A stretch of 64,000 bases of DNA, from contig MU008186.1 of assembly GCA_010909165.1 (NCBI GenBank), forward strand, positions 186,001 to 250,000, read 5' to 3'. A model generated the notes under the pieces. That model saw only the letters and a list, made by a program, of their open reading frames with translations. It was not told the DNA's origin and made no database searches. Every line of letters starts with the position of its first letter. Position 1 is the first letter of the stretch. Positions 266 through 58,769 of this stretch are shown here, in pieces. Made by a program: the position numbers and the translations under genes. The stretch is from Anthoceros angustus. Its lineage: Eukaryota > Plantae > Anthocerotophyta.

Positions 266-359
266 ATGAAGTGCTGGAAATCTTAGAAGCCGGGGTTGTC
301 GATGTCTTTTAATTCTTTGCACAATAAAACCCAAAACGTAAGGACACATAAGGGCTTGC

Positions 360-880: not shown

Positions 881-899
881 TGGTAAAGGAAAAAATACG

Positions 900-2140: not shown

Positions 2141-2199
2141 CCCTCGCCTAGCTCCCTCCCTCACTTCCCACATGCTTCATGCTCCTCACGAGAGGTGCT

Positions 2200-2400
2200 T
2201 GTCTCCCGGCCGGCGCCTCCTCTGCATGGCCTCTCCCTGTTTGCCCACATGGGCGGAGGTGGAACCCCTCTGACACCTCGAAGGCGCCGGCGCCCTCCTC
2301 TCCTCCTGCATGGCCTCTCCCTATTTGCCCGACCAGGCCGGGAGGAACCCCCTGACACCTTGAAGGCGCCGGCCGGCGCCGCCCTCCCCTGCCTGCGGGC
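2200..2400. repeat. About 80-90 bp imperfect tandem repeat (2-3 copies)
   Basis: ctgcatggcctctccct[ga]tttgccc...ggaacccc(t)ctgacacct[ct]gaaggcgccggc repeated. Confidence 0.7.
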
Positions 2401-4249: not shown

Positions 4250-4640
4250 TGGGAGAGAAGAGCAGATGGCAGCAGAGGCTGCCCACCACAATCGGGAGGC
4301 GCACGCAGCTTCCATATATGGGCAGCGATCCAGACAACCCATCCAGCGGCCCGGCAATGTTGGTGGAATCGCACACCGCCCCACTGCTGGAGGTAAGGTT
4401 AGACGTTTGGGTTTCATTGGCATAGCTGTTTTCCCCAACTTTTCTCATCACTGTGTGGTGGGAACCATGCATGTAGGTAAAAGGAGTGGAGGTGGAATTC
4501 CACTTTTGAAGCCGGTGGTATCGCCAACTATCCCGCGTCGCCACCCCAGACCTTAACTTATATGCGGCAATTAGGAGAAGTCCTTCCCGTGGAAGATATG
4601 GGGAACAGCCATGTAGCAGACCCCGCGCTGACAATATGGC
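4250..4640 (+). pseudogene. ORF X remnant (unknown transposon-associated ORF upstream of the transposase)
   Basis: SHHCVVGT / PLLKPVVSP / YAAIRR(fs)VLP match SHFSLVTFG / PLATNLISP / YAAIARQVLP of the minus-strand ORF at 51696-52200. Confidence 0.45.
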
Positions 4641-4759
4641 GGAACCCAATCGGAGCCTAAGACGAGGATTGTTCCCTCTGCCGACGGGAGATCATGAGGC
4701 AGAAGCATTGCACCATGAAGATGAGGGCAGCGACGATGTCTTCCAGGGCGGACACGATC

Positions 4760-7440
4760 GTGGGGAATTCCCTCCTGCTATTACATTCCAAGCAAAACCT
4801 TTGAGCGATTCATTGCAGACTGAGAAATCGCGTGGGAGATGCATGCGAGGAGGAGGGCTTCCGGCGTGCCTTTGCGAAGAAGTGATGTGACTGCAATCGC
4901 TGGAGAGTTTCGGAAGCCATGCTGCAATCAAATGTGTGTTCAGAAATTGACAAAAGAAAAATTCCAAGAACATCGGTATAGGTTCCTACGCATGGGACGT
5001 CAAGAGCAAGAGACATACCTTGAGTCCCTCTTAAAGGTGGTAAGTGATGGCGGAGTTCACACAAAGGTTCAACCCCACCTTGTTGGTGCGACATCTTACA
5101 GATGTTGCCTACGAGCATTTAGGCGGGTTTTCTGTATTGGTCATAAGCGATATGAAGAGTTGGCGGTGCGTGCAACTCGCCGTGGGATAACCGAGACCAA
5201 ATCCATCACAACGGATCATCACGGGATGCACTTGCGTGGATGGACAACGTTTTCATGTCCATGGCGGAGCGGCTCCCCAGCGGTATACAATCTTCCGGAC
5301 ACGCATAGGCCGGAGCTATGGGCCCGACAAGCGACAATGTGAGCGGTCACAAACAAGGGCTATGACATATGCACGGTTTCTAAGGCTCGAAGGTGCACTT
5401 CCGGTGTTAAGATACCTAAGTCCAACAGTTTTCTACGTGCGATATGCGAGGTTAAAGGCAACCATTGAACACTTTTCAAAGGTGGATCAAGGTATGGCAT
5501 CCCTTCCCATCCATTCCCTTCCCTATTTGCGTTGGCTATGTGGCGGATGTCAAGATAGCCATAGTTGGGAGCGGCGCGCCTCCTCCCTATGGCTATCTTG
5601 ACATCCGAGTGTCTTGACGTACAAGGAATGGTTTAGGGGAGGAGGCGCCGGCGCCTCCTCCACCTCCGGAGATAGGAGAGAGGGTTTAGAGGAGGAGGCG
5701 GCCGGCCGGCGCCTCTTCTCTCCTTCGAAGTTGATTGTACCGGCATGGGCGGCTTGTAGATGCTAAAGAAACGTACATTGTTTGGTGCGGAGAAATATCA
5801 ACATGCGCTTGAGGCACATCGCGGATTATCGGCAGAGCGTGCCAAAATGGCCAACACCGGACGAAAAGCTACGTTGAGCCCCACAAGTACATGTTACTAC
5901 TATTGATGGGATGGACCAAAAGAAAACGGAGATCCCACATTTTTACGGTGGCCAAAGAATTTAAGTGAGGAGTGCGTAGCATACATGTGGTGGGGCTGCA
6001 TGGTTCATAACTATACATATAAAGCGGCGGCATATTTGCACTATGCAAACCTTGAACGATGCAAATCTGACGATATGCATCATCCAAGATGTTCTGCACA
6101 ATTATGAAGGGATATTGCCTAAAGTCTTGTACTTGCAGTTGGACAATACTTGTCGAGAGAACAAAAATCAACTTCTTTTGCATATCGAATATGTTAGTAG
6201 ACATGGGTACATTTCGGAAGGTGAAGGTGGGCTTTACGCTAGTGGGGCACACACGACGGATTGACGGATGTTTTCACGGTTTAAAGCACGAAACACGAGC
6301 GCACATTGCACGCGCTATCCGATATTCTCGGAAAAGCATACACACCAACTCCGGTGAAAATTCTCACCGAGGTCCGGACTTGGTCATATGTGGCCCATCG
6401 GAAGAGGAGATGGTCGGTACACATTACCACAGTGTCAGGCCCGAATAACCTTCGTTCCAACACCGCTTTAAGATAACACGGGAGGACAAGGCGGGCGAGG
6501 TCTAGTCACGGTTATTGAAGCAAGCAATATTCGACATCTCCGCTATGGGAGGCGAAGGAGGCTTGGAGTTCTTGAAGTTCGTCCGTCTAATGACATCACA
6601 TCACCTCTCCTAGCACGCGTCTAGGGACAAAAGGCTCACTTCCGGGTTAAAGGCAACGGTGTGGCCCATCTTAAAGAAGGGCTCTCGGCTTGCGTGCATA
6701 TATTGCCGCAGATGAACATTTGTGGTAGGAGGCCTTCTGGGAGGACCAGCATGAGATTGCGGTTATCGTGGAGAACAACATTGGCTGGCGCTCAAAAGCC
6801 ACGGAAATGGTTTTCTAGGTCGGACGTTGAAGATACTGATCTGACCTTTGCGCTTACCAAATGAAAGCCTTCGACGAAGCATTATTGAGGGAGCTTCGCG
6901 TGATATGTACTTGGGGCTTACCGGCAAGTGGCTCGGCATGACAAGAAATGGAGCGATCGAATGGCGATGTGGTGAGATTGGAAATGGAATGTTCATCGCA
7001 ATTCCATGCTTGACGGATCGCTGAGACCTTTTGGATCGGAAGAGTGGTGGAAGTGAAACATGATGCTTTCCGTCCGAGTCTAATGGTCCAGAGTACAGAC
7101 GGAACATCTTGGCGCTTTCGAAGGCGATATGTTGAGGAGTACATCGTCATGGACAAGGGCCCAAGCATCGGGGAGAAGTCATCAAGGCAAGGGTCAAAGA
7201 CCGTGTTCCCCAAAACATACAAGAGATTTACATCAATGATACAAGAATATTGTACTATGGTTTCAACCTTACTACGCGGAAGCATTTATACGCCAACGAC
7301 AAAAGGGCTATAAAGGAGAAGCTAAACGAGATCTGTGATTGAACCAGCCAGTGAAGATGTGTCAGACAATAGCGATGAGGAGGAGGCGGATATTGACAAC
7401 ATGGATGATGTTGACGTGTCTTGGAAGAACCCTAGGCGAA
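4760..7440 (+). pseudogene. Sola1-like DDD/E transposase, two exons (intron about 5492-5759), many frameshifts
   Basis: KPCCNQMCVQKLTKEKFQEHRYRFLRMG; CCLRAFRRVFCIGHKRYEEL; donor CAAG|GTATGG at 5492; catalytic-type motifs IDGMDQ, QLDNTCRENKN, GFTLVGHT; acidic C-terminal tail near 7350-7440. The superfamily assignment rests on motif pattern only. Confidence 0.75.
5544..5607. repeat. Perfect 21-bp inverted repeat (hairpin) inside the transposase intron
   Basis: cggatgtcaagatagccatag (5544-5564) and its exact reverse complement ctatggctatcttgacatccg (5587-5607). Confidence 0.9.
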
Positions 7441-8196
7441 CATGACTTGAGACATTGTCTTTGTTTATGGTTGTTCTAGAAGGGAATAATAAAAAACTAC
7501 ATCAGGCGGGGAGGCGTACTCCTTTCTTGTCTTTTCGTTTTCATATGGTACACCACACTAGTGGTCGATCATCATGTCGCAACAACACTAAACAAAAGGC
7601 TTGATAATTGTGTTTCTGATTGAAACCACGGTTGGAAGTTTGACAAGCGGCAAAGCGGCGCGAATCTCACCTTAATGCCGTGATTGCGACTATCAATCGT
7701 TGGGGTGGGTACAACGTCGCTTGCCCAGCGTAACGTGGCCGCCTACACCCGAGAATGCGCCCATAAAATGTGAAAGTTGCATATATAGGGATGATTTCTA
7801 CCACCCTTTCCGTGTCAGTTCATACCCTCTCAAGTTTCACAGGGTACGGCGGGACATGATGCATAGGGTTTGAGGCCCACCATGGTGTCAAATTCTAGAA
7901 TGACCAAGTCTTTGTTCGATTGACCGGCCTGACTGGGGAAGTTAATGGGCTCTATTTCGACACTTCCACAGGTGTCTGCCTTTCCTAATACCATGCACAC
8001 ACCCTGGCGGGTCCATGAAACCGATGCTTCGCTCGGGTGCACACCCTACTTTTCAGTGTGAAATTGTACAGTTTCCGTGGACCACTGATTCCCAACCCAT
8101 TGGAAACCCCCTTTGGTGTATATTGTACAGAAAACCCCCTTCCTGTATATTCACCCCCTTGCAACTATATCGTGTTATGTCCATTATGCTTAGTCT

Positions 8197-35821: not shown

Positions 35822-36795
35822 ATGGCGGCCGTCCTCAGCTTGCAATCGGCTATGGGAGCCCTGTCGATCGGGGGCTTCTCCTCCAGCTCCCTCATGGGAG
35901 TCGGCGCTCCTCAACCGCATTCCCTGTCTCTGGTGTGTGGCATTCTAAGCTCGTGGCAAAGCAAGTGGTCTCTGAATGATCTCCATTACAGCGACCTTGT
36001 CCATGCCGTTCACGGTAGCCGCTGGCATATCTGCATGGAGTCGTTCAGAATCAGCTAACATTGGCCTTTAATGGACAAAATCTGCAGGGGATTCCACCGA
36101 GGAGACCGTCTGTCATTACAATGGAGGTGAGTGAGTGATCAGAGAAGCTGCACAGCGCTGGATGACTAGCGCGCAGCGATTCTGTCAGTGAGCGGGGACT
36201 CAATGCTGCGTTGATTGTGTTGGTCCAGTGTTAAGGATCAGGTGACTGGACAAACAATGCTCTGCTGGTGCAGATTAAGCGCTGGGAAAGGAAGGAGGTG
36301 AAGCCTAACAGTTTGCCCGTTCTGAAGAAGTTACATGTCAAAGTGGGAGACACGGTGAAGATTATTGCCGGGGCAGATAAGGGCAAAATCGGTGAAATCA
36401 GTCGAGTTTTCCGGCATAACAGCAAGGTCCTAGTGAAGGATATCAACCTGAAGACGAAGCACGTGAAGCCAAAGGCTGAGGGGGAAACCGGACAGATTGT
36501 TCAGGTGCGCTGCAGATCAGAGTTTTTCTATCATTGCTCCAACTATCACAACTTCAACCTGCTGGGACAGGCGCGTCAGTTTGCTAATTTGCTTTCAAAC
36601 TCTCTACAGGTAGAAGCCCCAGTTCACAGCTCGAATGTGATGCTGTATTCGAAAACGGCTAAGGTAGCAAGCAGGGTTGGCCACAAATTGCTAGACAACG
36701 GTAAGCGGGTACGCTACCTCCTGAAGACGGGAGAAGTCATCGATAGCCCCGAGGAATGGAAGAAGGTCCACAAGTCACAGAAGAAGGAGAAGTAG
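35822..36795 (+). CDS. RPL24: Nuclear-encoded plastid 50S ribosomal protein L24 (uL24c), 4 exons
   Basis: Transit-peptide-like MAAVLSLQSAMGALS; IKRWERKEVKPNSLPVLKKLHVKVGDTVKIIAGADKGKIGE; EAPVHSSNVMLYSK; stop at 36795. Confidence 0.93.
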
Positions 36796-40100: not shown

Positions 40101-42677
40101 TGATGTGAATCACACACCTTACTTTCTAAAAGCTTCCACGCCATCACAGAGAGACGCTTCATGAATGGCAGCTTCTTTGGCGGCACCTTCTCATGATGAC
40201 AAAGAAGTTGATGATTATCAATAGGGGATCTGCAACCATTTCCAGCAATTGCTTAAATCCAGAATCCTCACTGTTGTCAGGGTTCAAACGAATCTGACAA
40301 ATGTGTTGCATCTCTCAGCTTGACGCACAGCAACAAATAAAGACAATGCAAGTTGCACACCCTCAGAGTCCTAGATTTACAAGCACTGCACAAGTACAGC
40401 ATTCCCAACTGTCAGGGAGCAAGGTAGTATAGTAAAATCTCAGACAAGGGTCTGATTTCTCTACTTACGGTGGTTGCAAGTTGTCTGCCCAGTTCCGGAG
40501 CCAGTCAGCTGAAATCCAGTAAAACAGCATTTCTTGTTCTCTAACCTGCACCTCAGCAAGTGTGTCCCTCACTTCCCCCTTGCGCTTGGCGATTTCATGC
40601 ATAACATACTCCTTCTTCAGATTGTACTCCTCACAAGCTCTACAGAATTCTTCATTTATTTGATCCACTTCACGTTGTAACTGCTCTGGCAAGGATTCCA
40701 GAACTGCACCATGGCTGTTGCTCGCCTGATCTACACTACTGTACATAAGCATGTATGCATCAGCCGACGTGAGCACATCTTGATCCACTGAGGATGCATT
40801 CCCCTCCCCAGGGCCGTCCAAATTCCTTGATGACCTCTCTCCATCTTTCCCTTCCATGTCTCTTTTCCGAGCCATTCCAGTTGGCACCTCTCCAAGTGGG
40901 TGGTATCCCAGACTTGTGACGTCTTCGTCATCTAGCTGCCACCATTGTCCGGTGCACTCGTCTTTCACATGTGCAACATAGTGGCCACTGTTTGCCATAT
41001 TTCCCCTGTGCACCAGAATTGCAGACAGCGTGTAGAAAGACCGTCTTCTTCCAGCTCCATAGCCACCAAACCCCGAAGCACAGATTCGAGGTGCCATGTC
41101 TAAAGTCCTTGGAAAGCTGAACTTGGAAGTCACCTTCTTCTTTGTTGTCGTCTGCGACACAGTTCAGTTGCGACCCTGTCAGACTCAGGACACCATGATC
41201 TGAAACCCAGCACTGCGCCCACTGCAAGAGGAAGGCTTGATACAAAACCTTAGAGTTGAAAACAAATCTCTTCAGATGGAAATTTAGCACAGGTGGCAGA
41301 GACCGTAGTTGTGTGTAGTGAGTGGCATCAACACGGACTTTGCAAAGCTCACACACGTATTGATTTTCTCCTTGCAGCTTCTCCTCACTGAAATAATCCT
41401 CCATGCTCTCCTCCAAGCTAGAAAATCCCTTTACATTCAACTCCAGCTCATAGAAATCCACCAACTGCTTAGAGGCATCAGAGTCCTGTCGGCACCTTGC
41501 ACACCTGCAAGCACGACAGGCGCAGAGCGCAAGTCAGGGAACAATATTTCTTACCAGCTGAAAGCAATCTGGAGAACATATCAAGCAGCTTATGGAAGCC
41601 AACGGTGGCAGCCCGGCTCTGCTAGCAGCAGCAGCTTACTTGGTGACATATGAGAACGTCCCCCGAAATACATTTTGAACCACGTTCTGTGCATGTCGAC
41701 TTCTGGACTGGCTAAGAACTCTTTCCAGCAGGGAAAGCAGCAACTTCATGAACTCTTGGCCATCCTGTTGGATAGCATTGTCGAGCTCCAAGGTACTAGC
41801 AAATGCAGCAGAGTCCACGGCATTTCTCTTCCCACTGTGAAGCAGTGCAAAAAGCCGGCAAAGCTGATGCAACACAGGTTGCCGTTCAACCAGTTCAGCC
41901 TCAGCTGACAACACGCCATACCGAAATGCCCGGTTCATGTACAGACATTGCAAGACGCTATTCACATAACAGGTCGCTCCCAAATTTGTCAAACCCGAAG
42001 GAGAGTTACCATCCGGCCGCATCCTCTCACCGGGGTCAGGGCCAAGATCTGCCACCATCTCGCTAGCCTTTTGCCAAAGACCTTGCTTGCGCACGCCGCT
42101 GCTAGGGACTAACCCGCAGAAGCAATTTGGCGAGTCTTTCGAATTCGTCCTACAACCACTACAGTAAGGCTTGTCCAGATTGTACAGCTGGCAGATATCA
42201 TCCTGACCAATTTCCTTCGACCGATCGATCTTCCTGTTGCCAAGCACCCCAAAACAAAATCATCACCATCCAGCAGTCACCCGGGTTCTCCGGATTCAGC
42301 AAACAACCAGCTGGACTCTTCAGAAATACAGCATACTAACAGAAAAAAGCCCCTCCCATCCAAACCCACAGCCAAATTCCGGCATTCTAATGCCGAACCC
42401 CCCGCTTCCAAGCCACAGACCGTTCTTACACGCATTCCCACCCTCAATCTCTCCTCTGGTCTCAACAGCCCGGAACCCCATGCAGTCTGAGCCCGACTTA
42501 GGGTTGCCTGAAGGCCGTGACACCACTCCCCCAGTCCCCCGAGCAAGCAGCAGGCAGCACACCCACAGACCTGCAGACTTGCGTACACGGAGATTATCAC
42601 CTGAGGGTCTCCTGCACCGGATCGCACCGTTGTTTCTTCCCATTCTGCCGGGTATTGGGGCCGTCCGAGTACCTCAT
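37116..42677 (-). CDS. UBP26: Ubiquitin-specific protease 26 (USP48-like), multi-exon
   Basis: Exon 1 (42677-42601) [13 protein letters not shown]; PNCFCGLVP; Cys box [19 protein letters not shown]; QQDGQEF; His box [15 protein letters not shown]; DUSP-like [12 protein letters not shown]; C-terminal [13 protein letters not shown]. Confidence 0.92.
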
Positions 42678-43805: not shown

Positions 43806-44455
43806 GTGGTGGGTGGTGTGGAGGAGGTCGCGGTTATTTTTATTTTTGAGGTCATGGCTTCTATTGTCGCTAGGTGTAAAACAGTGAAATATGTAGACAA
43901 CAAGGTATCAATATTGGAGACTAAATTACATGATATTGACGACAAATATGAAGACAGCAGGGTATCTATAATGGAGATTAGAGTAATATTGAGGCGAAGA
44001 ATATTTTCTTCAGGGAAAAATATGAGTCTCTTTTGGCTAAGCACCAATCTTTGGCATGGGACTCGGAAGACGAGGGGGGTGAGGAGGGCTAGGAGGATGA
44101 AGAAGATAAGTTCAATTCCGTAATGGATGATCTTATAGATAAGAGATTTAATAGTCATGATGTTATCATTAGAAAATTGCAACATGATCTTGAATCGGCA
44201 AGCTCATGGGCTAAAGATTTTGAGGCGTCTTTCCAGGTCAAGTTTGATTCATTGCTTTTGCAAGTCAATGCCTTGCAAACTCTTGTTCCTTGTGTAAGTT
44301 GCTTATCGAAGGCAGATCTGGTACCTAGTTTGGAAGCCTACAAGAAGATTATTCTCGAGCTTATTCATGCACAGAGGGAAGAAATGCACAGTTATATGGC
44401 CAAAAAGTTGCAAGATTTGGATGATTAGGTTGGAAGACTCTCGGAAACGTTGGTG
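43806..44455 (+). pseudogene. Degenerate coiled-coil ORF of unknown (probably TE) origin
   Basis: Two overlapping ORFs (KVSILETKLHDIDDKYEDSR; IRKLQHDLESASSWAKDFEASFQVKFDSLLLQVNALQ) with heptad character; no family recognised. Confidence 0.3.
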
Positions 44456-46355
44456 GAGCAAGGGTTATAAAATGAAGTTTTTTCACGGACCATGGTGGAG
44501 AAAGCCATAAATTTGGAAAATCATTTCACTTCAACGGAACAAGTTTACCTACATATTTGGAGAAGCTTACTGGTAAAAACCTCATGGAGATTAATGATCC
44601 CCCTGCTCCTTCTTGTTTTGGTGGCAACACAGTATCGAAAGTTGTTTCTGAAACATGCTATTTAGTGAAGGGGGTGATTATTCAGCATGAGGGTTTTCTA
44701 CTTTTTATCTGCAAAAGGGGGTTTTTGATGGGTGTTGAATCCGATGTTCACCGCTTATGTTCGAAAAGATGATCGAAAGTTGTTTCAAACATGCTATTTA
44801 GTGAAGGGGGTGATTATTCAGCATGAGGGTTTTCTACTTTTTATCTGCAAAAGGGGGTTTTTGATGGGTGTTGAATCCGATGTTCACCGCTTATGTTCGA
44901 AAAGATGGTCAGAAAGAAGGGTGAACAACTATACTAGACAGTGCTTGCCGGTGCGTGACATGTGGAGTGAGGTTTCTAGTTTACACCTATGCCGACTTTA
45001 GAGCCCATTTACAGCCCAAAATTGAGGGCCATGACTGCCGGTGAAGATGAGTACATTTGACGATGCCACCACAAACAATCAGAAAAACATGGTCCAACCA
45101 ATGTCATAAATCTCCTATTTCAAGTTTCCCCAGAGAACCCTTCCAAACATGGTGGTGGTATGGGTCATACCAATCCCATCGACATGGAATTCATGGAATT
45201 CGTGGTTTTGTTTTGTGGTGGTGCTATGGGTCATCTAACAAAACATCAATCCCGGAAAGTGGCATGTCATCTCCTATCCCTTGGTAGGTTGGAGGAATCG
45301 ATTTTGAGACAAGAGGGCTTGGATGTGTCACCAACCATCCGACATGATCTTGAATCGGCAAGCTCATGGGCTAAAGATTTTGAGGCGTCTTTCGGTCAAG
45401 TTTGATTCATTGCTTTTTGCAAGTCAATGCCTTGCAAACTCTTGTTCCTTGTGTAAGTTGCTTATCGAAGGATCGGTACCTAGTTTGGAAGCCTACAAGA
45501 AGATTATTCTCGAGCTTATTCATGCACGGAGGGAAGAAATGCAGTTATATGGCCAAAAAGTTGCAAGATTTGGATGATTAGGTTGGAAGACTCTCGGAAG
45601 CGTTGGTGGAGCAAGGGTTATAAAATGAAGTTTTTCACGGACCATGGTGGAGAAAGCCATAAATTTGGAAAATCATTTCACTTCAACGGAACAAGTTTAC
45701 CTACATATTTGGAGAAGCTTCTTGGTAAAACCTCATGGAGATTAATGATCCCCTCCTTCTTGTTTTGGTGGCAACACGATCGAAGTTGTTTAAAACATGC
45801 TATTTAGTGAAGGGGTGATTATTCAAGCATGAGGGTTTTCTACTTTTTATGCAAAGGGGTTTTGATGGGTGTTGAATCCTGTTCACCGCTTATGTTCGAA
45901 AAGATGGTCAGAAAGAAGGGTGAACAACTATACTAGACAGTGCTTGCCGGTGCGTGACATGTGGAGTGAGGTTTCTAGTTTACACCTATGCCGACTTTAG
46001 AGCCCATTTACAGCCCAAAATTGAGGGCCATGACTGCCGGTGAAGATGAGTACATTTGACGATGCCACCACAAACAATCAGAAAAACATGGTCCAACCAA
46101 TGTCATAAATCTCCTATTTCAAGTTTCCCCACAGAGAACCCTTCCAAACATGGTGGTGGTGCTATGGGTCATACCAATCCCATCTGCCAGACATGACATT
46201 CATGGAATTCGTGGTTTTGTTTTGTGGTGGCGGCCGGCGCCCTACATCACAATGCCGAGAAAGTGACATGTCATCTCCTATCCCTTGGTGGGTTGTAGGA
46301 ATCGATTTTTGAGACAAGAGGGCTGCTGGATGTGTGTCACCAACCCTCTGACATG
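44182..46355. repeat. About 1.0-1.16-kb tandem duplication with a nested about 140-bp duplication (about 44630-44900)
   Basis: acatgatcttgaatcggcaagctcatgggctaaag at 44182 and 45342; both copies end near ggatgtgtcaccaacc. Confidence 0.9.
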
Positions 46356-46712
46356 ATGCTATGTATAGTCATGTGACTAGCAGTGATCAAATACATGAAA
46401 GTGCTGGGTATGGATGCATTATTAGTGACTGGTATTGTGCAAGCCCTAAATGTGCACATGCTCTAAATGTGCAAATAGCGCGGCAAAAGGGTGTCCCCTG
46501 AACTGCGCTAGTGATTTAGTACTAAAACCGTTGAGTGTTTGGAGCAGGGGAGTTTCCAACGGCTAACATCTTGTAGAATATATGTCGTTTCAAACTTTCC
46601 CCATGGACAATGCACTACAATGAACGTATCGAATGTGTCTTGCGGGTTTTCCCTTCTCAAAACATAAAATGTGGCTACGGCCTATGCGCACTTTTAACAT
46701 TCGAAGTGCATT

Positions 46713-48390
46713 CTACTCTCCTTCTGAATTCACGCCGTCATCTTCGTTGGGTACGGCATCATCACCGTCATCTTCACTGTCCTCTGCGGCACTTTGACTT
46801 GCTGGTTGTATGAAGCCCCGCAATTCATTCAGCTTGTCCTTGATCACCTTCTTGTCTATCGCATATAGATGTTTCCGAGAATTCAAGGTGAAACCATAAT
46901 ATAAGATGATGGTTTTGTACATACTTCCGAATATTTTTAGGTTCAACCTTGACCCCTTTTCCGGTTTGTTGCTTGGTACGCATCCCCGAATTATATATTC
47001 TTCTACGCACCTACCCTCAAACGCATCTGTGTGCACTGTTCAGTACCAGTGAACAAGAAAGTGAGGCTGCGGGTCATCTAACAAAACATCAGTCACCTTC
47101 CCAATCCAAAATGGTCTGTTGTGCGTGTCCCTGTCGGCTGGAACTGCAAGGAACATGCCCTTCTTTATTTCCAAAACATCACCATTCAATCGTGTCATCC
47201 CCTCCTGTTGCCTTCCCAAGTTTTGGTATGGTCCCAAATATATATCTCGTTGTGGAAGGTCCCTCAACAACGCCTCCTGTAATAAAGATTCATCAGGAAG
47301 GCGCAGAGGTTGGACTGTTACTTCTACTTCGGACCTCGAATACCACTTCCAAGGTTGCTGAAGGACGAGCCCAATGTTGTTCTGAACAATAACAGCAATC
47401 TTGTCACATACGGCCTAAGGGCCGAAAGACCTTCCATCAAATGAGCCACACCATCGGTAGGTGATAAGCCTGCCAACTTTCCTTTTCTATCCCTTGACCG
47501 GAGGGCGGTCAATGGAGCTGCCGTTATCGTGTCCAAAGGCACGAATTTTAAAAACTCCAACCCGGCTTCTGTCTCCCAATGGGCTGATGTGGAATACTGC
47601 TTGCCTCTAATGACAGTATCAAACCCACGGTCACCTTTGGCTTCTCTCATAATTTTGAATTGGTGCTAGTAAGACAGGTTGTTTAATTTTTTGACCGCCG
47701 CCTTGTATGCGTGTCCACCCTGCCCTTGCCTGATTGGCCAAACATATGACCGGAAGTCCGGAACTTCAGTCAATATCTTCACCTCTGGCTGAGGAGTGTA
47801 CGCACTAATCAAAATCTCTGACAATGCAAGAAGAGTGTGAGCTTCCTTGTGTTTTAAGCTTTTTGAGTAGCATGAAAACATTTGGTCGATTTGATCATGT
47901 GTATGCCCCACCAACAAAAACCCCACTTTCACCTTTTCAAACGTCCCCATGTCCACGAGCATGTTGAGATAGGCAAAAAGCAGTTGATTCTTGTTCTCTC
48001 TGCAGGTGTTGTCCAATTGCAAATATAACACTTTCGGCAATACTCCTTCGTAGTTATGTATAACATCCTGGATGATGGTAATCGTAAGATTGGCATCATT
48101 CCGCAAGTTCGCATAATGCAAGTAAGCTCTTGCCTTAAAGGTGTAATTGTGGATCATGCACCCAACCACATGAACCTGAATACGACACTCCTCATCCAAG
48201 TTCTTTGGCCATCGAAGTAGATGAGGAATCTACATCTTCTTGGTCCATTCCATCGATTAAGAGTAGAAGGTACATATGTGGTTCTACATAACTCTTGCTC
48301 CTGTGTTTCGCCATCTTCAACCGCTCCTTGTGTAACCGCAAACGATGGGCATCTAAAGCCGCTTGATATTTTTCTCTGCTTTAAAACATG
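46713..48390 (-). pseudogene. Sola1-like DDD/E transposase exon 2 (catalytic domain and acidic tail)
   Basis: EKYQAALDAHRLRLHKERLKMAKHRSKS; LLIDGMDQ; 177-aa open stretch with LYLQLDNTCRENKNQLLF (48008-48019) and GFLLVGHTHDQIDQMFS (47879-47908); tail EDDGDDAVPNEDD. Clear homolog of 5760-7440. Confidence 0.85.
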
Positions 48391-49958
48391 CACACTCGTC
48401 AGTTACATATGAAGAGACATGCAATTACATATAAAGGATCCTCCTATGTTGGGACACTACATCTGCCAGCGTCCCGCCATAATACCAACGCAGAGGAACC
48501 TCAAGTTCCTCAGGCGCATTTTCGTGGCCGTGGCGATCTGCGTCCACCACAACCCATGCCTTTGGCTTTTGGTCTAGGAAGGCGCCGGGCCGGCGCCTAC
48601 CACATGGATAAATTGAAGGTGACCCCGGGTTCTTCGCCATGTGGGCGTTGGCCATTCTTTGTCCCCACGAAGGAACCTAAAGGTTCCGCCTGACTTGTTG
48701 TGGTGGTGGGGGCGGCGGCCCGGCCCCACCTCGGGGATCCTTAACGTTCTGTTATAGGGTTCTTGGCCTTGGGGGCGCTGGCCGTGGCGTCTCACCACAT
48801 GTTAGCCACAACATCTTGGGCATATTCCCGGACTAAGGCAACGCCGCAAGTCCGAACTTCACCAATATCTTCACCTCCGAGGAGGTACGACTAATCAAAA
48901 TCTCGACAATGCAAGAAGAGTGTGAGCTTCCTTGTGTTTTAAGCTTTTGAGTAGCATGAAAACATTTGGTCGATTTGATCATGTGTATGCCCCACCAACA
49001 AAACCCCACTTTCACCTTTTCAAACGTCCCCATGTCCACGAGCATGTTGAGATAGGCAAAAGCTTGATTCTTGTTCTCTCGCAGTGTTGTCCAATTGCAA
49101 ATATAACACTTTCGCAATACTCCTTCAGAAGTAACATCCTCGGATGATGGTAATCGTAAGATTGGCATCATTCCGCAAGTTCGCATAATGCAAGTAAGCT
49201 CTTGCCTTAAAGGTGTAATTGTGGATCATGCACCCAACCACATGAACCTGAATACGACACTCCTCATCCAAGTTCTTTGGCCATCGAAGTAGATGAGGAA
49301 TCTCTGTCTTCTTCTGGTCCATTCCATCGATTAAGAGTAGAAGGTACATATGTGGTTCTACATAACTCTTGCTCCTGTGTTTCGCCATCTTCAACCGCTC
49401 CTTGTGTAACCGCAAACGATGGGCATCTAAAGCCGCTTGATATTTTTCTGTTTCAGAAAACATGCACACTCGTCAGTTACATATGAAGAGACATGCAATT
49501 ACATATAAAGGATCCTCCTATGTTGGGACACTACACTGCCTGACCGACGTCCCGCCCCATACCAACGCAGGAGGAACCCTCAAGTTCCCTGTTTCGGGCC
49601 CGCTGGGCCCTCTGCGTCACCACAACCCATGCCTTTGGCTTTTGGTCTAGGAAGGGCGCCAGCCGGCCGGCGCCCTACCACATGGATAAATTGAAGGGTG
49701 ACCCCCGGGGTTCTTCGCCATGTGGGGCGTTGGCCATTTGCTGTCCCACAACAGAAGGAACCTAAAGGTTCCGCCCTTGACTTGTTGTGGTGGTGGGGCG
49801 CTGGCCGGCCGACGTCCCACCTCAGGGGGATCCTTAACGTTCTGTTATAGGGTTCTTGGCCTTGGGGGGCGCTGACCGGCCGGCGTCTCACCACATGTTA
49901 GCCACCGCCAACATCTTCCGGGCATATTCCCGGACTAAGGCAACGCTGTCGCAAGTCC
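47756..49958. repeat. About 1.1-kb tandem duplication covering part of transposase exon 2 and its intron
   Basis: gaacttca..aatatcttcacctc at about 47760 and about 48855; both copies end at ggactaaggcaacg; junction microhomology aagtcc. Confidence 0.9.
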
Positions 49959-50388
49959 AGACAGCATGGAAGATATCTAGGTGCCAGTCCTCCACTAGCT
50001 CCTCCGCCTCCTCCAGCCAAGGTCCGAAATCCGGATAGCGTTTCGTGACAATGTTCCGTTCCACCAAGCGCCAAGGTTCCCAAACCTCCGCCGCCTTCTT
50101 TGGCCCCATTGCTGTGCGCCTTGCTCTGCTGTTGGGGCTTGAGGCTGAGCAATTCTCCTTCCTCCCTTCGCCGCGTCGAATACTTTGCTCGGGGAGGTGA
50201 GCCTCTCGGAATTGCGCTCGGACGCTTGAAAAGACAGCGTCAGAGAGTAGGGTGTCTGAGCGCGAGAGACTGCGAAAACCGCCGCGACGTCGCTCAAGAG
50301 AATGACCTTGGCTCGGGGCTAGAGCGTCGGGAGTAACCGAAGCGTGGAAGGCGTCCCTTCGCTGCCCGTAACTGTCAGAGTCCTGCAT
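49560..50388 (-). other. Unidentified ORF remnant lying within the transposase intron
   Basis: MGPKKAAEVWEPWRLVERNIVTKRYPDFGPWLEEAEELVEDWHLDIFHAVWTCDSVALVREYARKML looks protein-like; absent from the copy 1 intron; family not recognised. Confidence 0.35.
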
Positions 50389-50609
50389 TGCTTACACTAG
50401 CTTTACGCTGCCGCCGCCGCTTGCGTACTCTAGCCTTACTCTATGCCAGAGCGTACCCGGAGCGTGGTTACCTGCCCATAACGGCCACTGGCAACCCTAC
50501 GGTCCTAGCCCGCTGCATGCCTGTCCGTCTCTCAGCACCGTCCACGTGGCGCCCCTTGCCAAAATACGCTCCCCGTTCCAAAGTTACCTTTCCTGGCGTA
50601 CTTATCGCA

Positions 50610-50755
50610 ACTTACTCCGGAGTGCAGTCCGGACTTACCACGGTTTCCTCCGAAGTGCGGTCCATATCCGCTCCAGAGTGCGGTCCGTAACCGCTCCGGA
50701 GTGCAGTCCGGAGTCTCTCTACCTACTCCGGAGTGCAGCCCGGAGTTACTCCGGC
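50610..50755. repeat. Short tandem subrepeats with core ctccggagtgc[ag]gtcc (about 5-6 copies)
   Basis: Directly visible upstream of the 49888-50388 ORF. Confidence 0.8.
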
Positions 50756-50825
50756 TTTAATTCTCCCTTTTCGCCTTATTTTCCACTCCACACTTACGAA
50801 AAAAGCATAACCTAGCTTATTACCT

Positions 50826-51584
50826 ACCCAAGGGAAGAGCCCACAGTCCACAAAGCCCCTGAGTGAGACTTTGACAGCGTCAAGGGAGGAAAGCATTGCA
50901 CCTCAACGGAGACGCGCAGCTGGTGTCACATTGAAGAAAAGTGAAGGAGAGGTAGTGACGGCGGATTTCCGAAAACCATGTTGCAATCAAATGTGCTTGC
51001 AGAAGCTAACAAAAGATAAGTTTCAGGAGCAGAGGTACCGATTCCTAAGGATGGGCAGGCCGGAGCAAGAGACATTTCTAGAGTCCTTGTTCAAGTGGAG
51101 GGAGGTGGATGTGACAGGGGTAAAGTAGTCACACATATATTGGGGTCCATTCCAATGCGCTGCTGCTTGAAGGCATTCAGAAGAGTATATTGCATAGGGC
51201 ACAACAGATATGAGGAACTGAAGAGTAGGGTCATTTCGAATGCCCCGTGGGATGGTTTCAGGCATAACCCCAAACCTCAGTCTTCTTATGTGCTTGGAGC
51301 CATATCGTGGATGGACAAGACATTTTTGTTTATGGCCGAGCGGCTGCCGAACGTGGAAGTCTTCAACCTTCCCGACACATACACAAGGTTGGAAATATGG
51401 AGTATGTACAAGCAGCAATGCGAAACCTCTGGGATCCGTTATGTGAAATATCCATGGTTCTTAAAGTTATGGAAAAGCAACTTCCCAAGAGTGAAAATAC
51501 CGAAATCAAATAGGTTTTCCACATGCTACCTCTGCGCAGGTCTGAAGAGCACTATTAGGAACACAATCCACAAAATTGATCAAG
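50826..51584 (+). pseudogene. Transposase exon 1, inverted relative to exon 2
   Basis: KPLSETL..RRRAAGV..DFRKPCCNQMCLQKLTKDKFQEQRYRFLRMG; CCLKAFRRVYCIGHNRYEEL; KIPKSNRFSTCYLC; donor CAAG|GTAAT at 51585, the same position as in copy 1. Confidence 0.85.
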
Positions 51585-51695
51585 GTAATTCTTACCACAT
51601 CGACGGGGCTAGTTGACATGCATGGGAACTTATGGAAATGGTTTTCTTGAGTGGGGAGTGGTTGTTTTGAACCCTGGGCCATATGGGCAAGAACC

Positions 51696-52200
51696 CTAGA
51701 ATCGAGTCTTACGGTTCTTGCTATGATGGAATGCGGTGGGACGCCAACCAACCGTCGTCCCACATATGCAAAACCCTCTAAGGAGGTTTGCTCCAAGAGT
51801 CTGAGGGAGGACCTGTCGCGCAATGGCCGCATAGCTGCATGCTGACCAGTTTTCAATCTGCAGAACCACTAGTCTGCAGCAACAAAATTTGTCCTTGGCC
51901 TTTGGCCGGAAGGACTGTAAAGTTCCTAGCCTTGGCCAAGGAATAAGGGCAAAGGGAGGCATAAATAGCCTCCGGCCGCGAACAGGTGAGATCAAGTTGG
52001 TTGCTAGAGGCTCCCACTTGATAGTGCGGTTCCCAAAAGTCACAAGAGAGAAATGAGACAAACTGTAGGGACGAAGTATGGCTGCCTTTCCATTCAGACA
52101 AACATCTACAATCCAAGAATCCATGGCTGGGTGCCCCACATATATAGGCAAAACCCCCAGGAACTCTCGATGAAGTGCCTGCTCGCTCTCGATGGTAGGC
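51696..52200 (-). pseudogene. ORF X (unknown), open for about 165 codons
   Basis: Long open frame homologous to 4250-4640. Confidence 0.5.
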
Positions 52201-52204
52201 ACTT

Positions 52205-53291
52205 TAGGTCTATTTATAATCCTACTTTCCTTGGCCTTTGAATAAACAATAATATTCAAGTGCTCAATCACCTATTCGCCCTTTTCCTTGATTTACGATT
52301 TTTGAAGGACAAGAGGGTGGATAAGCAAATGATGGATTCCGTCCTCCAAAGCTTTGTTGAGAAGACCACTAGCGATGAACTGAGGATGATTGTGATGCAT
52401 GGAGTGGAGGAGGCACATACAGTTAGAGAAGCAATGAGAAAATGGAGCAGGAAAGAGGGCTTGGTGTAGTGAAGACAAACATGAACAATGACAGGGGTGG
52501 ATTTGAGACTGTGGAATACATAACTATCGGTTGGGGTGTGAAGGATGGGAGCACAAAGGACAGAATTGCAATGCTACCAAATGCTATGCAGGGAACGTTC
52601 AACAATGGAAGGTCCGTCATTGCTCATGACACAATTATCAAAAAACAGGTTTACATGTCCCATGACAAGTTGGTGGTCTGCCCTTACCAGAGACCATTGG
52701 GGTTGATGATGAAACTCATTAAAACCTTCTCCAAAGAGGGAGATTGGGTTCTGGATGCATCCAGAACCCAATCCAATGCCGCTCCCAGAGCATGCATCCA
52801 CCCAAGCATGCTCTGGGACCGGCACAACTCTATTGGCAGCGTTACTTATAGGAAGGAATTGTATCGAGGCTGACTTGAGATGTGCAGGTTATATTTCACA
52901 AAGAATTCATGGATTTGAGATGCTCCCAGACGAAGTTGAAGAGTTGAATTTTGAAGCTCACCAGAGAGGACTAGCACAGTTCTGGGCAAAGGAGGTTTGT
53001 ATTAGCAAGAAGGACTCCTTGAAAGCACAAGTGGTTTCTTTGAGTGCCCGCCGGAATAAGACAAGGACTGGCAATTTGTTGGAGGCTGGCCATCAAACAC
53101 TGGATAACGTTTGGCAGCCTGTGGCGGATATTAATGATGAAGAAACAGATGGGGACGAGGACTCGAGCACTTTGGTTGAAATCGACAATTTCGATGAGGA
53201 AGATCTTGAGCGGATACAAAACTTGGCTATAGTTTATGATTCGGTGTCAGCACAAGCACCGGTTGAGTCACAAGTTAGCCCAGACGTGTAG
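52205..53291 (+). pseudogene. Beta-class amino (N6-adenine/N4-cytosine) DNA methyltransferase, 5'-truncated and frameshifted
   Basis: Motif X-I block VCPYQRPLGLMMKLIKTFSKEGDWVLDA|CSGTGTTLLAALLIGRNCIEAD matches the N6_N4_Mtase consensus HPTQKPxxLxxxLIxxxSxxGDxVLDPFxGSGTT...GRxxIGxE; degenerate motif IV region near 52275-52310; 49-bp insertion at 52761-52809. Confidence 0.85.
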
Positions 53292-53683
53292 AGGTTTGTA
53301 GATGTGAACTATTGTTTGTGCTAGTGGTCAATTTTGGCGGAACCTTAAACAGGGATGGTCTCCAACTTGCTTGTAGACGGCCGTACCCATACCTAGTTTG
53401 TGATTACTGGGCCTCTTGTCAGTGTGAAAATGGATCAACGTACAAAACGCACTTCCTATTACCACTAAAGGCGCCGGCCAGCCGGCGCCCTTAACCCTTT
53501 CTTCTGGTTTTCTTTTTTCACAAACTGCGCATTCAGCTCTAGGAAGCATTGTCCATGGTATGGGACACCTGGAAACCTGGAAAACCACAGTTTTTGGAAC
53601 CATGTGTTATTAGTGAAGGAGGTTTCGTTCAACCAAAAGGGGGTTCGGATATTCACCCCCTTCACTGAATAACATGTTCTGAG

Positions 53684-54951: not shown

Positions 54952-57900
54952 ATGGCCGCAGTATGGCAACCGGACCCGTTGTGCACGCAACAAAATGATG
55001 GTGTGTGTACAAGGATTCTAGCAAGAGCTCCCGCTCTCCTCACTTCAGGGAGTCAACCCCTGGCAAACAAGCAAGCCTCGAGGTGCAGCAGTGTGAGGAG
55101 CCCAGCACTTCCAATTCCGAGAAAATGTGTGCGTGGGGACGGAGTTTCCTTCGATGGTCGTCGCCAGGAGCAGGAGCACTTGTGGCAACAATTTTTTCTG
55201 GAGCCTACCATGTGGTGGGACAGCAGACGAGATAAGAAGAGCTCCCATGCGCCTGACTTCCGGCGTAAGGGGTCAGGCGAGGTCCTGTGGTTAAACAGCA
55301 TGCTCAAGCCAGCTTGGGTCGATGAGCAGCTCGTTTCCTTGGATATGCAGATGGGTCATGATGCCTCTCCTTCCAAGTCGAGCTCTGCGGACAAGCCTGA
55401 ACCTGGTAGGAGTGCAGGATCGGTGATGGGCGTCGTAACGGCTGGAACAGTGAGCATGTTATGTCAGCAGGGAAAGCTTTCTGAGGCTGTTGGAGCCCTG
55501 GAATATTTGGCGCAGACAGACTCTGCCATTTCTCCGTCTCAGTTTTCCACTGTGCTGAAACTGTGTACGGCTAAGAAGGATTTGGTTTTGGGGCGACGAG
55601 TTCATCATCTTATTGTCAAACTGGGGTACGATTCGAATGCATACTTGGGGAACCATATCTTGCGCATGTACGCATGTGGAGGTAGGCTAGAGGAGGCCAT
55701 GGATGTGTTCACCAGGGTGGGCAAACCAGACGCCTTCATGTGGTTTTCCATAATCTCTGCACATGCTAAGCAGGGGAAACCTAAGGAGGCCATACAACTG
55801 TACCATGAGATGCGCAGGTCAGGCGTGAAGGCGGATGCCCACGTCTTTGTAGCTGCCCTTCAAGCTTGTGCATTTGCCGACTTGGAATCTGGCAGAAAAG
55901 TGCACTGTGATGTGTTGCACAGTGGCATTCCTCTAACTTGTTTGTTGGCACCTGCCTGGTGGACATGTATGCAAAATGTGGTGAACTGAAAGATGCACGC
56001 CAGGTTTTTGACAGCATGGCCACAAAGGATGTGGTGACATGGACGGCCTGATTGCTGGGTATGCAGCAAGGGCTTGGCCAAGAGGCGCTTGTTGTATGGA
56101 CAAATGGAGCAGGAGGGCCTCATTTTGGCTGACCATGTTACTTTTGCTTGCCTTCTGAAGGCCTGTGCAAGCACTGGTGCCTTACAGAAGGGCAGGCAGC
56201 TGCACTCACAGATTGTGGAAAGAGGACTTTTAGATAACACACTGGTTGGGCAACCATATCTTGCGCATGTATGCATGTGGAGGTAGGCTAGAGGAGGCCA
56301 TGGATGTGTTCACCAGGGTGGGCAAACCAGACGCCTTCATGTGGTTTTCCATAATCTCTGCACATGCTAAGCAGGGGAAACCTAAGGAGGCCATACAACT
56401 GTACCATGAGATGCGCAGGTCAGGCGTGAAGGCGGATGCCCACGTCTTTGTAGCTGCCCTTCAAGCTTGTGCACTTTCCGCCGACTTGGAATCTGGTAGA
56501 AAAGTGCACTGGGATGTGTTGCACAGTGGCATTCCTCTGAACTTGTTTGTTGGCACCTGCCTGGTAGGCATGTATGCAAAATGTGGTGAACTGGGGGATG
56601 CGCGAAGGGTTTTTGACAGCTTGGCCACGAAAGATGTGGTGACATGGACGGCCTTGCTTGCTGGGTATGCAAAGCATGGGTTTGGCCAACAGGCACTTGT
56701 TCTGTATGGACAAATGGAGCTGGAGGGCCTCATCGTGGCTGATCATGTTACTTTTTCTTGCCTTCTGAAGGCATGTGCAAGCGCTGGTGACGTACAGAAG
56801 GGCAGACAGCTGCACTCACAGATTGTGAAAAGGGGGCAGCTGCACGACACTGTGTTAGGCAACTGCCTTGTGGACATGTATGTAAAATGTGGTGAACTGA
56901 AGGATGCGCACCAGGTTTTTGACAGCTTGGCCACAAAAGATGTGGTGACATGGACGACCCTGATTGCTGGGTATGGACAGCAAGGGCTTGGCCAAGAGGC
57001 GCTTGATCTGTATGGGGAAATGGAGCAGGAGGGCCTGATTGTGGCTGACCATGTCACTTTTTCTTGCCTTCTGAAGGCCTGTGCAAGCGCTGGTGCCTTA
57101 CAAAAGGGCGAGCAGCTATACTCACAGATTGTGGAAAGAGGACTTTTAGATAACACACTGGTTGGCAACTGCCTGGTGGACATGTATGCTAAATGTGGTG
57201 AACTGGAAGGTGCACGCCGGGTTTTTGACAGCTTGGCCACAAAGGATGTGGTGACATGGACCACCCTGATTGCTGGGTATGCACAGCAAGGACTTGGCCA
57301 AGAGGCGCTTGTCTGTATGGACAAATGGAGCAGGAGGGCCTGATTTTGGCTAACCATGTTACTTTTGCTTGCCTTCTGAAGGCCTGTGCAAGCACTGGTG
57401 CCTTACAGAAGGGCAGCTGCACTCACAGATTGTGGAAAGAGGACTGCTGGATAACACATGGTTGGGCAACTGCCTGGTGGACATGTATGCTAAATGTGGT
57501 GAACTGGAAGGTGCACGCCGGGTTTTTGACAGCTTGGCCACAAAGGATGTGGTGACATGGACCACCCTGATTGCTGGGTATGCAAATCATGGTCTCGGCC
57601 AAGAGGCAATGGTTCTGTCTGGACAGATGGAGCAGGAGGGCCTGATTGTGGCTGACCATGTTACTTTCGCTTGCCTTCTGAAGGCCTGTGCAAGCACTGG
57701 TGCCTTACAGAAGGGCAGGCAGCTGCACTCACAGATTGTGGAAAGAGAACTGCTAGATAACGTACTTGTGGGCAACTGCCTGGTGGACATGTATGCCAAA
57801 TGTGGTGAACTGGAAGATGCACGCCGGGTTTTTGACAGCTTGGCCACCAAAGACGTGGTGACTTGGACCGCCCTGATATCTGCGTATGGTACTTGTGACG

Positions 57901-58769
57901 ATGGTCACAGAGCACTAGCTTGTTTTGAGGAGATGTTACTTGCCGGCATTCAGCCTGATGGTGCTACTTTAACTTGCCTTCTAGCAGCCTGCAGTCATGA
58001 GGGACTTGTCCACGAGGGTCGCAAGCACTTTGATTCCATGGCTGAACAGCATGGCATCAAACCTGCTCTTGAGCATTACAGTTGCATGATTGATCTCCTT
58101 GGGCGTGCGGGCTATCTAGATGAGGCAGAGAACATGCTGTTATCATGTGAAAGCCAAAGCAATGTTGTGGGGTTGACATCTTTGTTGAACGCCTGCAGAA
58201 GTCACGGGGATATTGAGAGGGCGACACGGTGTTTTGAAAGTCTCCTTAAATTGGAGCCTCAGAGTGCATCCGCATATGTGCTCATGGCCAATGCCTATGC
58301 AGATGCAGGTAGGTGGAGCGATGTAGACAGGATTGAAACCCAGAGAATGGCAGCAGGAGCTAATAAGAAACCTGCAGTGGCAACCATTGAGGTGAATAAG
58401 CAAGTACATAGATTTCTGGTAGGAGAAAGACGAGAGGATATTGCGCTTAAGGTAGAGAGCACGAATGCACGTGTGAAGCAGGAAGGTGGCCACGCCCCTC
58501 ACACAAACTTGGTGTTGAAGCCAGTGTGTGAGAAGGAAAAGGAAGATGCGCTTTGTGGGCATGCTGAGAAGTTAGCTCTGGCGTTTGGTCTCTTGAACAC
58601 TCCGAGTGGGACACCTCTGGTGGTAACGAAGAATCTACGTATGTGCAGTGACTGCCACAGTTCCACGGAGATCATGTCAAGGCTTGAACAGAGAAACATT
58701 GTTGTGAGGGATGGGTACCGTGTGCATCGATTCGCAGATGGTTCTTGCAGTTGTAAGGGTAGACCCTAA
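54952..58769 (+). CDS. PLS-class PPR protein with N-terminal OSB-type PDF motif, E1/E2 and DYW:KP (GRP-ending) deaminase domain; candidate U-to-C RNA editing factor; frameshifts in the repeat array
   Basis: [37 protein letters not shown]; 306-nt P-L-S triplets; [10 protein letters not shown] in place of the PG box; HAEKLA, CSDC and SCSCKGRP-stop; intronless. Frameshifts at about 55870-56250 and about 57310-57420 may be assembly errors. Confidence 0.9.

Follow-up and report, generated by a model that had tools for sequence, protein, structure and literature searches.

The window analysed here, a 64,000-nt stretch of Anthoceros angustus DNA (contig MU008186.1, positions 186,001 to 250,000), carries at 44652–53678 what is very probably one decayed, non-autonomous copy (copy 1) of a Sola1-type, cut-and-paste DNA transposon family with a ParB-methyltransferase (ParB-MTase) accessory gene, and an older second copy (copy 2) at about 890–8176. 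Copy 1 is 9.0 kb long, or about 6.6 kb once its duplications are subtracted. An intact member of the family would consist of two divergent genes between short terminal inverted repeats starting with AACA, one of the two coding for a DDE transposase of about 890 aa and the other for a protein with a ParB-like part followed by a bacterial-type DNA amino-MTase. The original prediction, made from the letters of the window, had placed the element at 46700–53300 and described it as a three-part unit of a Sola1-like transposase, an 'ORF X' and a head-to-head amino-MTase gene. The termini proved to lie farther out, at 44652 and 53678, and what copy 1 contributes is the exact termini and the target-site duplication of one plant copy and the recognition of 'ORF X' as a transposase exon.

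Termini, genes and decay of the two copies

The right (MTase-side) terminal inverted repeat was located at 53649–53678, on the minus strand, by a repeat search and by alignment with copy 2. The left (transposase-side) repeat, AACATGCTATTTAGTGAAGGGGGTGA..., on the plus strand at 44652–44681, is complementary to it at 27 of 30 positions, so that the repeats have the form AACATG...CATGTT. The same four bases, CTGA, can be read directly from the sequence on either side of the element, at 44648–44651 and 53679–53682; this target-site duplication comes from one copy only and has a 1/256 chance of being a random match. The terminal 26-mer occurs three times in the window (0.00 expected), and an extra direct copy of the right terminal motif is found at 53601–53625. 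When copies 1 and 2 are aligned, homology begins exactly at the AACA(T/C)G terminus and the flanks are unrelated: the transposase-side terminus of copy 2 (8087–8176, reading AACACG... from 8176 on the minus strand) matches copy 1 in the expected orientation, with 72% identity between 44668–44741 and 8160–8087 (blastn). Terminal repeats and a target-site duplication, which the original prediction had left to be sought, are therefore present, and one terminus is shared with copy 2. Subterminal AGTGAAGGGGGT motifs were also found in copy 1.

The quoted transposase motifs IDGMDQ, QLDNTCRENKN and GHTHDQIDQMFS are all on the minus strand, at 47666–49469, and the 177-aa open reading frame (ORF) that contains the DDE core (47666–48199, minus strand) matches the Pfam family DUF7869 with an E-value of 2.8e-49. 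A tblastn comparison with an intact 889-aa relative (L005:1065–3734) yielded three blocks, with residues 104–306 at 50955–51559 on the plus strand, residues 313–587 at 49457–47537 on the minus strand and residues 667–837 at 47363–46830, also on the minus strand. The second and any later exons, covering residues 313–837, accordingly occupy 46830–49457 (minus strand), and exon 1 occupies 50907–51585 (plus strand), where it also matches 4848–5281 of copy 2 at 71% (tblastx). Because 'ORF X', as first noted at 50871–51616 on the plus strand, aligns with residues 104–306 of the relative, by sequence comparison it is the first exon of the transposase gene, inverted in copy 1, and no separate gene; the layout comprises two genes rather than three parts. 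Exon 1 bears the CCNQMC and FPRVKIPKSNRFSTCYLC motifs (CCxxxC; FP.V.IP....F..C..C), terminates at the GT following KIDQ and contains a frameshift near 51085–51095, where two ORFs overlap in different frames.

The motifs CCNQMC, IDGMDQ, LDNTCRENKN and VGHTHDQIDQMFSC of the window correspond to CCRLNC, MDGANQ, VDNTVAENKN and MVGHTHIQIDQIFSC in the Ectocarpus Sola1-1_Ec32 transposase, with which they were compared by eye, and the two share the patterns CCxxxC, DG(M/A)(D/N)Q, (L/V)DNTxxENKN and VGHTHxQIDQxFSC. For the curated Sola1-1_Ec32 transposase itself, the best blastp match is given as Repbase Sola1-1_PPa in the supplement (PMC12477816). On the strength of DUF7869 and this motif comparison, and not of a profile test, the transposase reads as Sola1-type, as had been predicted.

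Except for an inversion, the transposase of copy 1 is colinear with that of the 889-aa relative. We place the inversion in copy 1 because residues 104–306 are encoded on the plus strand and residues 313–837 on the minus strand, and these parts are colinear in copy 2. The inverted segment, with approximate ends at 49480 and 51640 (about 2.1 kb) and breakpoints in the intron after KIDQ|GT, holds exon 1 and the 5' intergenic region. Five tandem 23–33-bp repeats with CTCCGGAG palindromes lie at 50615–50751, just upstream of the transposase start, and three of the four CTCCGGAG sites in the window fall in this array. Inside the transposase gene, a 1.1-kb tandem duplication (47750–48853 and 48844–49958, 90% identical; blastn self-comparison and tblastn) doubles residues ∼ 315–487. 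Further tandem duplications run across the left junction at 44182–46360 (repeat search and blastn), where a 1.15-kb unit and a 136-bp unit are each present twice; 44182–44779 matches 45342–45915 at 94% identity (blastn), and these duplications yield additional terminus copies at 44788 and 45794. Within 6 kb there are, in all, two tandem duplications, distinct from each other and each with a unit of about 1.1 kb, and the 2.1-kb inversion lies alongside. As their units are merely 90–94% identical, the duplications are probably old. With its exon 1 inverted and frameshifted and with the 1.1-kb internal duplication, copy 1 fails as an intact autonomous element.

The accessory gene is represented in copy 1 by a remnant at 52242–53291 on the plus strand, opposite to the transposase body. 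Both genes lie within 44652–53678, and the remnant is enclosed by the terminal inverted repeats and the target-site duplication, 387 nt from the right end. It consists of a remnant of the MTase N-terminal half (52242–52466; colinear with residues 150–189 of the relative P0012 by blastp), a first piece of the MTase domain in a different frame (52442–52759) that contains the target-recognition region and motif X (CPYQRPLGLMMKLIKTFSKEGDWVLDA), a frameshifting insert of 49 nt (52760–52808, equivalently 52757–52805) without GT-AG ends, and a second piece (52809–53291) with motif I (CSGTGTT), GRNCIEADL, an acidic tail and the stop codon; all four are on the plus strand. Motifs X and I of a beta-class amino-MTase, read earlier as CPYQRP...EGDWVLDA and CSGTGTT...GRNCI, are indeed present on that strand, at 52442–52925. 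Against the Pfam profile N6_N4_Mtase (PF01555; cut-off 26.7 bits), the first piece alone scored 19.8 bits and the second piece alone had no match in Pfam. When the two were joined with an X at the break, the score rose to 45 bits (E 1.7e-11, profile positions 161–209 of 221), with motif X followed by motif I (the FxGxG loop for S-adenosylmethionine, SAM) at the C-terminal end of the domain. The proposed profile check thus came out in favour of the joined core and against the separate pieces. A hidden Markov model (HMM) of the family recognized both pieces (E 2.3e-16 and 9.4e-11), phmmer with the first piece matched proteins P0001–P0004, and Ginkgo and Logan relatives matched the second piece at 44–50% in tblastn; searches of PDB sequences with each piece alone returned no MTase match.

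The catalytic motif IV is another matter: its position in copy 1 reads LDL--RF, compared with ADIPYGF in the family, and a motif search found no (D/N/S)PP(Y/F/W/H) in or beside the remnant. The family HMM also detected no ParB region in the six-frame translation of the window. Copy 1 is dead, with motif IV and the reading frame lost, and no writing of N6-methyladenine (6mA) or N4-methylcytosine (4mC) is possible. We considered the 49-nt insert as an intron and rejected it, since no register that preserves the motifs gives it GT-AG ends, and 49 nt is too short. An intron splits motif I right after SGTG in L006 (2762–3508) and in many of the loci L009–L088, where in-frame readthrough is possible; the insert of the window precedes that site by four codons and does not correspond to this intron.

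In copy 2, the Sola1 transposase gene (4848–7333, plus strand; blastn and tblastx) is colinear, with frameshifts. The DNA identity of the two copies is 70–74% (blastn), and both are therefore old. A piece of the linker of the ParB-MTase gene (VAMAKHLDCTSFEEVRREYPQH...) lies at 890–1040 on the minus strand, head-to-head with the transposase gene. Its 42-aa stretch at 1031–906 (minus strand) matches L002:219–344 by tblastx (55%, E 7e-10), and tblastn with residues 143–164 of the Ginkgo protein P0008 also reaches the piece, which corresponds to the ParB-MTase linker in the L002 and Ginkgo proteins. Neither tblastn with the pieces within the window nor the family HMM detected an MTase domain in copy 2; the remainder of its accessory gene would sit in the GC-rich block between its genes or before base 1 of the window. 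That block (296–4800) is of low complexity and 55–57% GC, has long Arg/Ala/Pro/Gly-rich ORFs on both strands and contains 13 CGGCGCCG palindromes. The claim that the whole layout recurs in copy 2 holds for the colinear transposase and the head-to-head linker piece, and fails for the MTase domain. Copy 2 is dead too, and the idea that the element encodes its own 6mA/4mC writer does not apply to either copy in this window.

The accessory gene family and its linkage to the transposase

An exhaustive phmmer search with the first MTase piece found four proteins, one of them Gb_37443 of Ginkgo, and a search with Gb_37443 found four further Ginkgo paralogues and several proteins from ENA. The accessory protein family is multi-copy in Ginkgo, and the accessory gene has its closest relatives among multi-copy genes of plants and other eukaryotes rather than among bacterial genes.

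The N-terminal ORF of the relatives has a conserved Y.VIGG.H.A(E/R)A block and gives weak Pfam matches to HTH_ParB (E 0.038) and DUF6551 (E 0.019). All of the top 20 PDB matches found by Foldseek for a model of this part, which has a low confidence (predicted local distance difference test, pLDDT, 53.6) and was used for the consistency of its top matches only, are to ParB, Noc, Spo0J or the ParB-like PadC. A model of the MTase domain of one relative (L004:2935–3720; predicted template modelling score, pTM, 0.70) matches CcrM (E 1e-11), M.PvuII, TTHA0409, M.RsrI and M1.HpyAVI, the values for CcrM, M.PvuII and M.RsrI ranging from 1e-11 to 1e-9, and the rotifer N4CMT (8s9o) is the match of rank 14. 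Both N6-adenine and N4-cytosine enzymes are found among these matches. Judging from this model, the MTase of the family is predicted to have the beta-class fold, and the view of the gene as a prokaryote-derived, beta-class MTase-like gene is supported.

In an alignment, the column that holds DPPY in bacterial enzymes reads DIPYGF, DIPHGY, DISQGY or, in P0004, DLPRGL, and the first proline of motif IV is absent from all family members compared. The number of loci that retain each motif is 44/51 for ADIPYGF, 39/43 for NPYQKP and 32/43 for DLFSGTG. The ratio of non-synonymous to synonymous substitution rates (dN/dS) between diverged copies is 0.05 for the N-terminal half of the MTase and 0.03 for the ParB part, as calculated from stop-free and gap-free matches only, a choice that favours intact copies. 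Such low values show that the accessory gene matters to the element and say nothing of what it does.

When metagenome contigs were scanned for the ParB block, 162 stretches matched; the 80 loci retained from these all belong to a single set of ENA assemblies. The transposase gene is found upstream, on the opposite strand, in 11/11 loci with at least 2.5 kb of sequence upstream of the ParB match, and of the loci with enough sequence downstream, nearly all contain MTase exons. The samples are few and related, and the loci are copies belonging to related families; they speak for a stable architecture and not for independent origins. Among the loci is a 7.6-kb element on a contig of ENA assembly ERZ1034427 (L052:180–7773). 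It begins with AACAC, and between the two copies of its perfect 33-bp terminal inverted repeat, AACACCGGGTCATTTGAAACAGGTAATATGTCG (AACACCGGGTCATTTG...), lie a transposase ORF of 890 aa and the ParB-MTase gene; two other loci, L039 and L051, diverge from it exactly at its terminus. Elsewhere, the MTase of L004 is encoded on the plus strand and its DUF7869 domain on the minus strand. In L005/L006, the 889-aa transposase ORF and a 583-aa ORF stand head-to-head, and MTase exons come after the latter; the merged L005/L006 contig, probably truncated at its left end, yielded no terminal inverted repeats. The sequence upstream in L008 is too short to show a transposase, and L007, taken up as a possible relative, proved to be a bacterial restriction-modification locus and unrelated. 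The enclosure of the remnant in copy 1, the 11/11 head-to-head pairs in other assemblies and the enclosure in L052 all bear out the prediction that the MTase is inherited cargo of the transposon.

The contig that carries L004 (ENA ERZ27311014, L004:1–9404) contains the 12-bp palindrome GATACCGGTATC 17 times as an exact match and 22 times when one mismatch is allowed (0.01 expected). All of these palindromes lie outside the long ORFs of its Sola1/ParB-MTase element, with arrays at both ends, and they are candidates for parS-like sites bound by the ParB-like domain, or for targets of the MTase.

As for the host genes in the window, a gene for a PPR-E-DYW editing factor is found at 54952–58769 on the plus strand and marks the window as land-plant DNA; its best named matches are from a lycophyte (Diphasiastrum), Ginkgo and ferns, at 42–50%. 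In the window it is broken up into three successive ORFs of 345, 365 and 466 aa; its relatives are single proteins of 690–810 aa. The split gene is either a pseudogene or the result of indel errors in the assembly, which bears on how much of the decay of the transposon is real. Other ordinary host genes nearby are represented by an exon of a uL24-type ribosomal protein (KOW and ribosomal_L24; 36268–36795, plus strand) and a ubiquitin C-terminal hydrolase (UCH) gene (40465–42247, minus strand).

Alternative explanations and possible function

Several observations weigh against reading 44652–53678 as a single Sola1 copy with a ParB-MTase gene. Which of the three terminus copies, lying inside tandem duplications, marks the original left junction is something that we infer. 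DUF7869 is not labelled as Sola1, and the motifs were matched by eye to one published sequence. The two-domain gene is attributed to the window from its relatives, copy 1 being without ParB and copy 2 showing merely the linker piece, and the ParB assignment draws on a model of low confidence. In L052, the four bases that flank the two ends do not match, leaving it without a target-site duplication; the contig may be a repeat consensus, which would account for this. The layout is also not fixed, as the genes are convergent in L004 and L055 and in tandem in L014, where the transposase is downstream on the same strand, although most loci are head-to-head.

It could be argued that the MTase just happens to sit beside a transposon, as an independent bacterial gene acquired horizontally or present as a contaminant, given that a single MTase domain is visible in the window and that its pieces alone stay under the Pfam cut-off. 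We regard this as highly improbable, since the remnant lies within the terminal repeats and the target-site duplication, its nearest relatives are multi-copy genes of plants and other eukaryotes and not of bacteria, the pairing is seen in all 11 informative loci and within the perfect repeats of L052, copy 2 retains a piece of the accessory gene head-to-head with its transposase, and a land-plant PPR-DYW gene is only 1.3 kb away. Somewhat less remote, and still quite unlikely, is the suggestion that the inversion, the two duplications, the frameshifts and the 49-nt insert of copy 1 are assembly errors that conceal a more intact locus. Two tandem duplications of ∼ 1.1-kb units together with an inversion within 9 kb are unusual, and the adjacent PPR-DYW gene is split as well. 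However, the duplicated units, at 90–94% identity, are old and do not look like collapsed or expanded reads; motif IV was lost through substitution and deletion, the ParB part is absent entirely, and a difference of 26–30% in DNA between the two copies indicates old elements.

With copy 1 read as a dead member of the Sola1 family, the question of function concerns its live relatives. There, the ParB-like part would probably anchor the protein at repeats within the element itself, a proposal made by analogy with phage ParB-MTases and with what the authors of PMC12477816 have suggested. The 22 GATACCGGTATC-type palindromes of L004, the CTCCGGAG array at 50615–50751 and the subterminal AGTGAAGGGGGT motifs are candidates for such repeats. 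The MTase part might then write 6mA or 4mC onto the DNA of the element or do no more than bind it, and by analogy such marking could time or license transposition or blunt silencing by the host. Dam control of IS10 and Tn5 provides a parallel in which methylation ties transposition to replication. The full version of this scheme, in which a land-plant Sola1 element encodes an active amino-MTase with DIPYGF that is directed by ParB to the element's own palindromes and whose self-written 6mA or 4mC on young copies controls transposition or resists silencing, strikes us as unlikely, if well short of far-fetched.

A pseudo-enzyme throughout the family, with DIPYGF in place of (D/N/S)PP(Y/F/W) and the MTase fold serving only in binding of DNA or SAM, for example as a partner of the transposase or a regulator, is less likely than not, yet has a real chance. 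In its favour, the first proline of motif IV is missing from all members, and P0013 and P0014, the nearest prokaryotic sequences, keep DPPY in that column. On the other hand, the Asp, a single proline and the aromatic position survive in ADIPYGF, which 44 of the 51 loci retain at a dN/dS of 0.05 for the MTase N-terminal half, and one proline can suffice: the N6-adenine methyltransferases Erm and KsgA function with N(I/L)PY. Motif I (SGTG) and NPYQKP are conserved as well; conservation alone fits either reading. Inactive MTase domains have precedents, as the MTase-like domains of DIRS1 elements and METTL14 are regarded as inactive (PMC4738411).

A multi-copy, transposon-borne ParB-MTase under strong purifying selection in plant-like genomes would be a candidate source of 6mA or 4mC signals, and would offer a natural instance of possible self-marking of DNA by a eukaryotic transposon. 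If DIPYGF does belong to an active enzyme, this would be a transposon-borne source of DNA methylation other than 5-methylcytosine in land plants, which are thought to have few DNA amino-methyltransferases (PMC4738411). The relatives add the conserved DIPYGF motif and the low dN/dS, and L052, with its perfect terminal repeats and full-length transposase ORF, is usable for experiments.

Comparison with known systems

The original prediction had held it possible that the element was undescribed. A Sola1 transposon with an opposite-strand ParB-MTase gene has in fact been published: the 21.5-kb Sola1-1_Ec32 element of the brown alga Ectocarpus (Genome Biology, September 2025; PMC12477816) has, opposite to the transposase strand, a gene for a 1104-aa protein with ParB-like and N4C/N6A DNA MTase domains, which its authors propose to bind and modify its own element. 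Sola1-1_Ec32 has AACCG termini and a 4-bp target-site duplication that is biased to A at its end (PMC12477816). The Anthoceros family resembles it in the signature motifs of the transposase, in termini that begin with AAC, in a 4-bp target-site duplication ending in A and in the ParB-like and MTase accessory gene on the opposite strand, the accessory proteins having been matched by domain description. It differs in its land-plant host, in its size (∼ 6.6 kb without duplications, 7.6 kb in L052, as opposed to 21.5 kb) and in terminal inverted repeats of about 30 bp instead of 282 bp, and copy 1 is dead. Full-text literature searches found no paper that places the pairing of Sola1 and ParB-MTase in land plants, and no such land-plant clade is listed in the 2015 review of eukaryotic adenine MTases (PMC4738411). 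The architecture is thus already published for Ectocarpus; the novelty lies in the land-plant host and in the conservation of the non-canonical motif DIPYGF.

Among prokaryotic systems, the beta-class N6_N4 MTases fused to ParB in phages and plasmids (the ParB-Tls locus) have the same succession of ParB and MTase and the same motif order, IV...X-I; P0013 and P0014 align across the whole MTase domain, and identity to the bacterial relatives is 24–27%. Unlike these enzymes, the family described here is eukaryotic, intron-bearing and multi-copy, has DIPYGF instead of DPPY and is linked to a eukaryotic DDE transposase.

Two eukaryotic systems are similar in part. In the red alga Bostrychia, according to a preprint, Plavaka transposons have accessory genes that encode ParB and adenine-MTase domains and lie next to inverted-repeat arrays. 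Plavaka PAG2 and PAG3 are likewise prokaryote-type DNA-modification genes in a DNA transposon, including a ParB-like domain, and the inverted-repeat arrays beside the gene may be compared with the 22 GATACCGGTATC-type palindromes of L004; Plavaka belongs to another superfamily, however, and its ParB domain is fused to a 2-oxoglutarate oxygenase and its adenine MTase to SET. Finally, N4CMT of bdelloid rotifers and DN4MT1 of Marchantia share with the family a beta-class amino-MTase fold of bacterial origin in a eukaryote, but these are 4mC writers domesticated as host genes, with demonstrated activity and canonical catalytic motifs, whereas the gene in the window is transposon cargo and a pseudogene.

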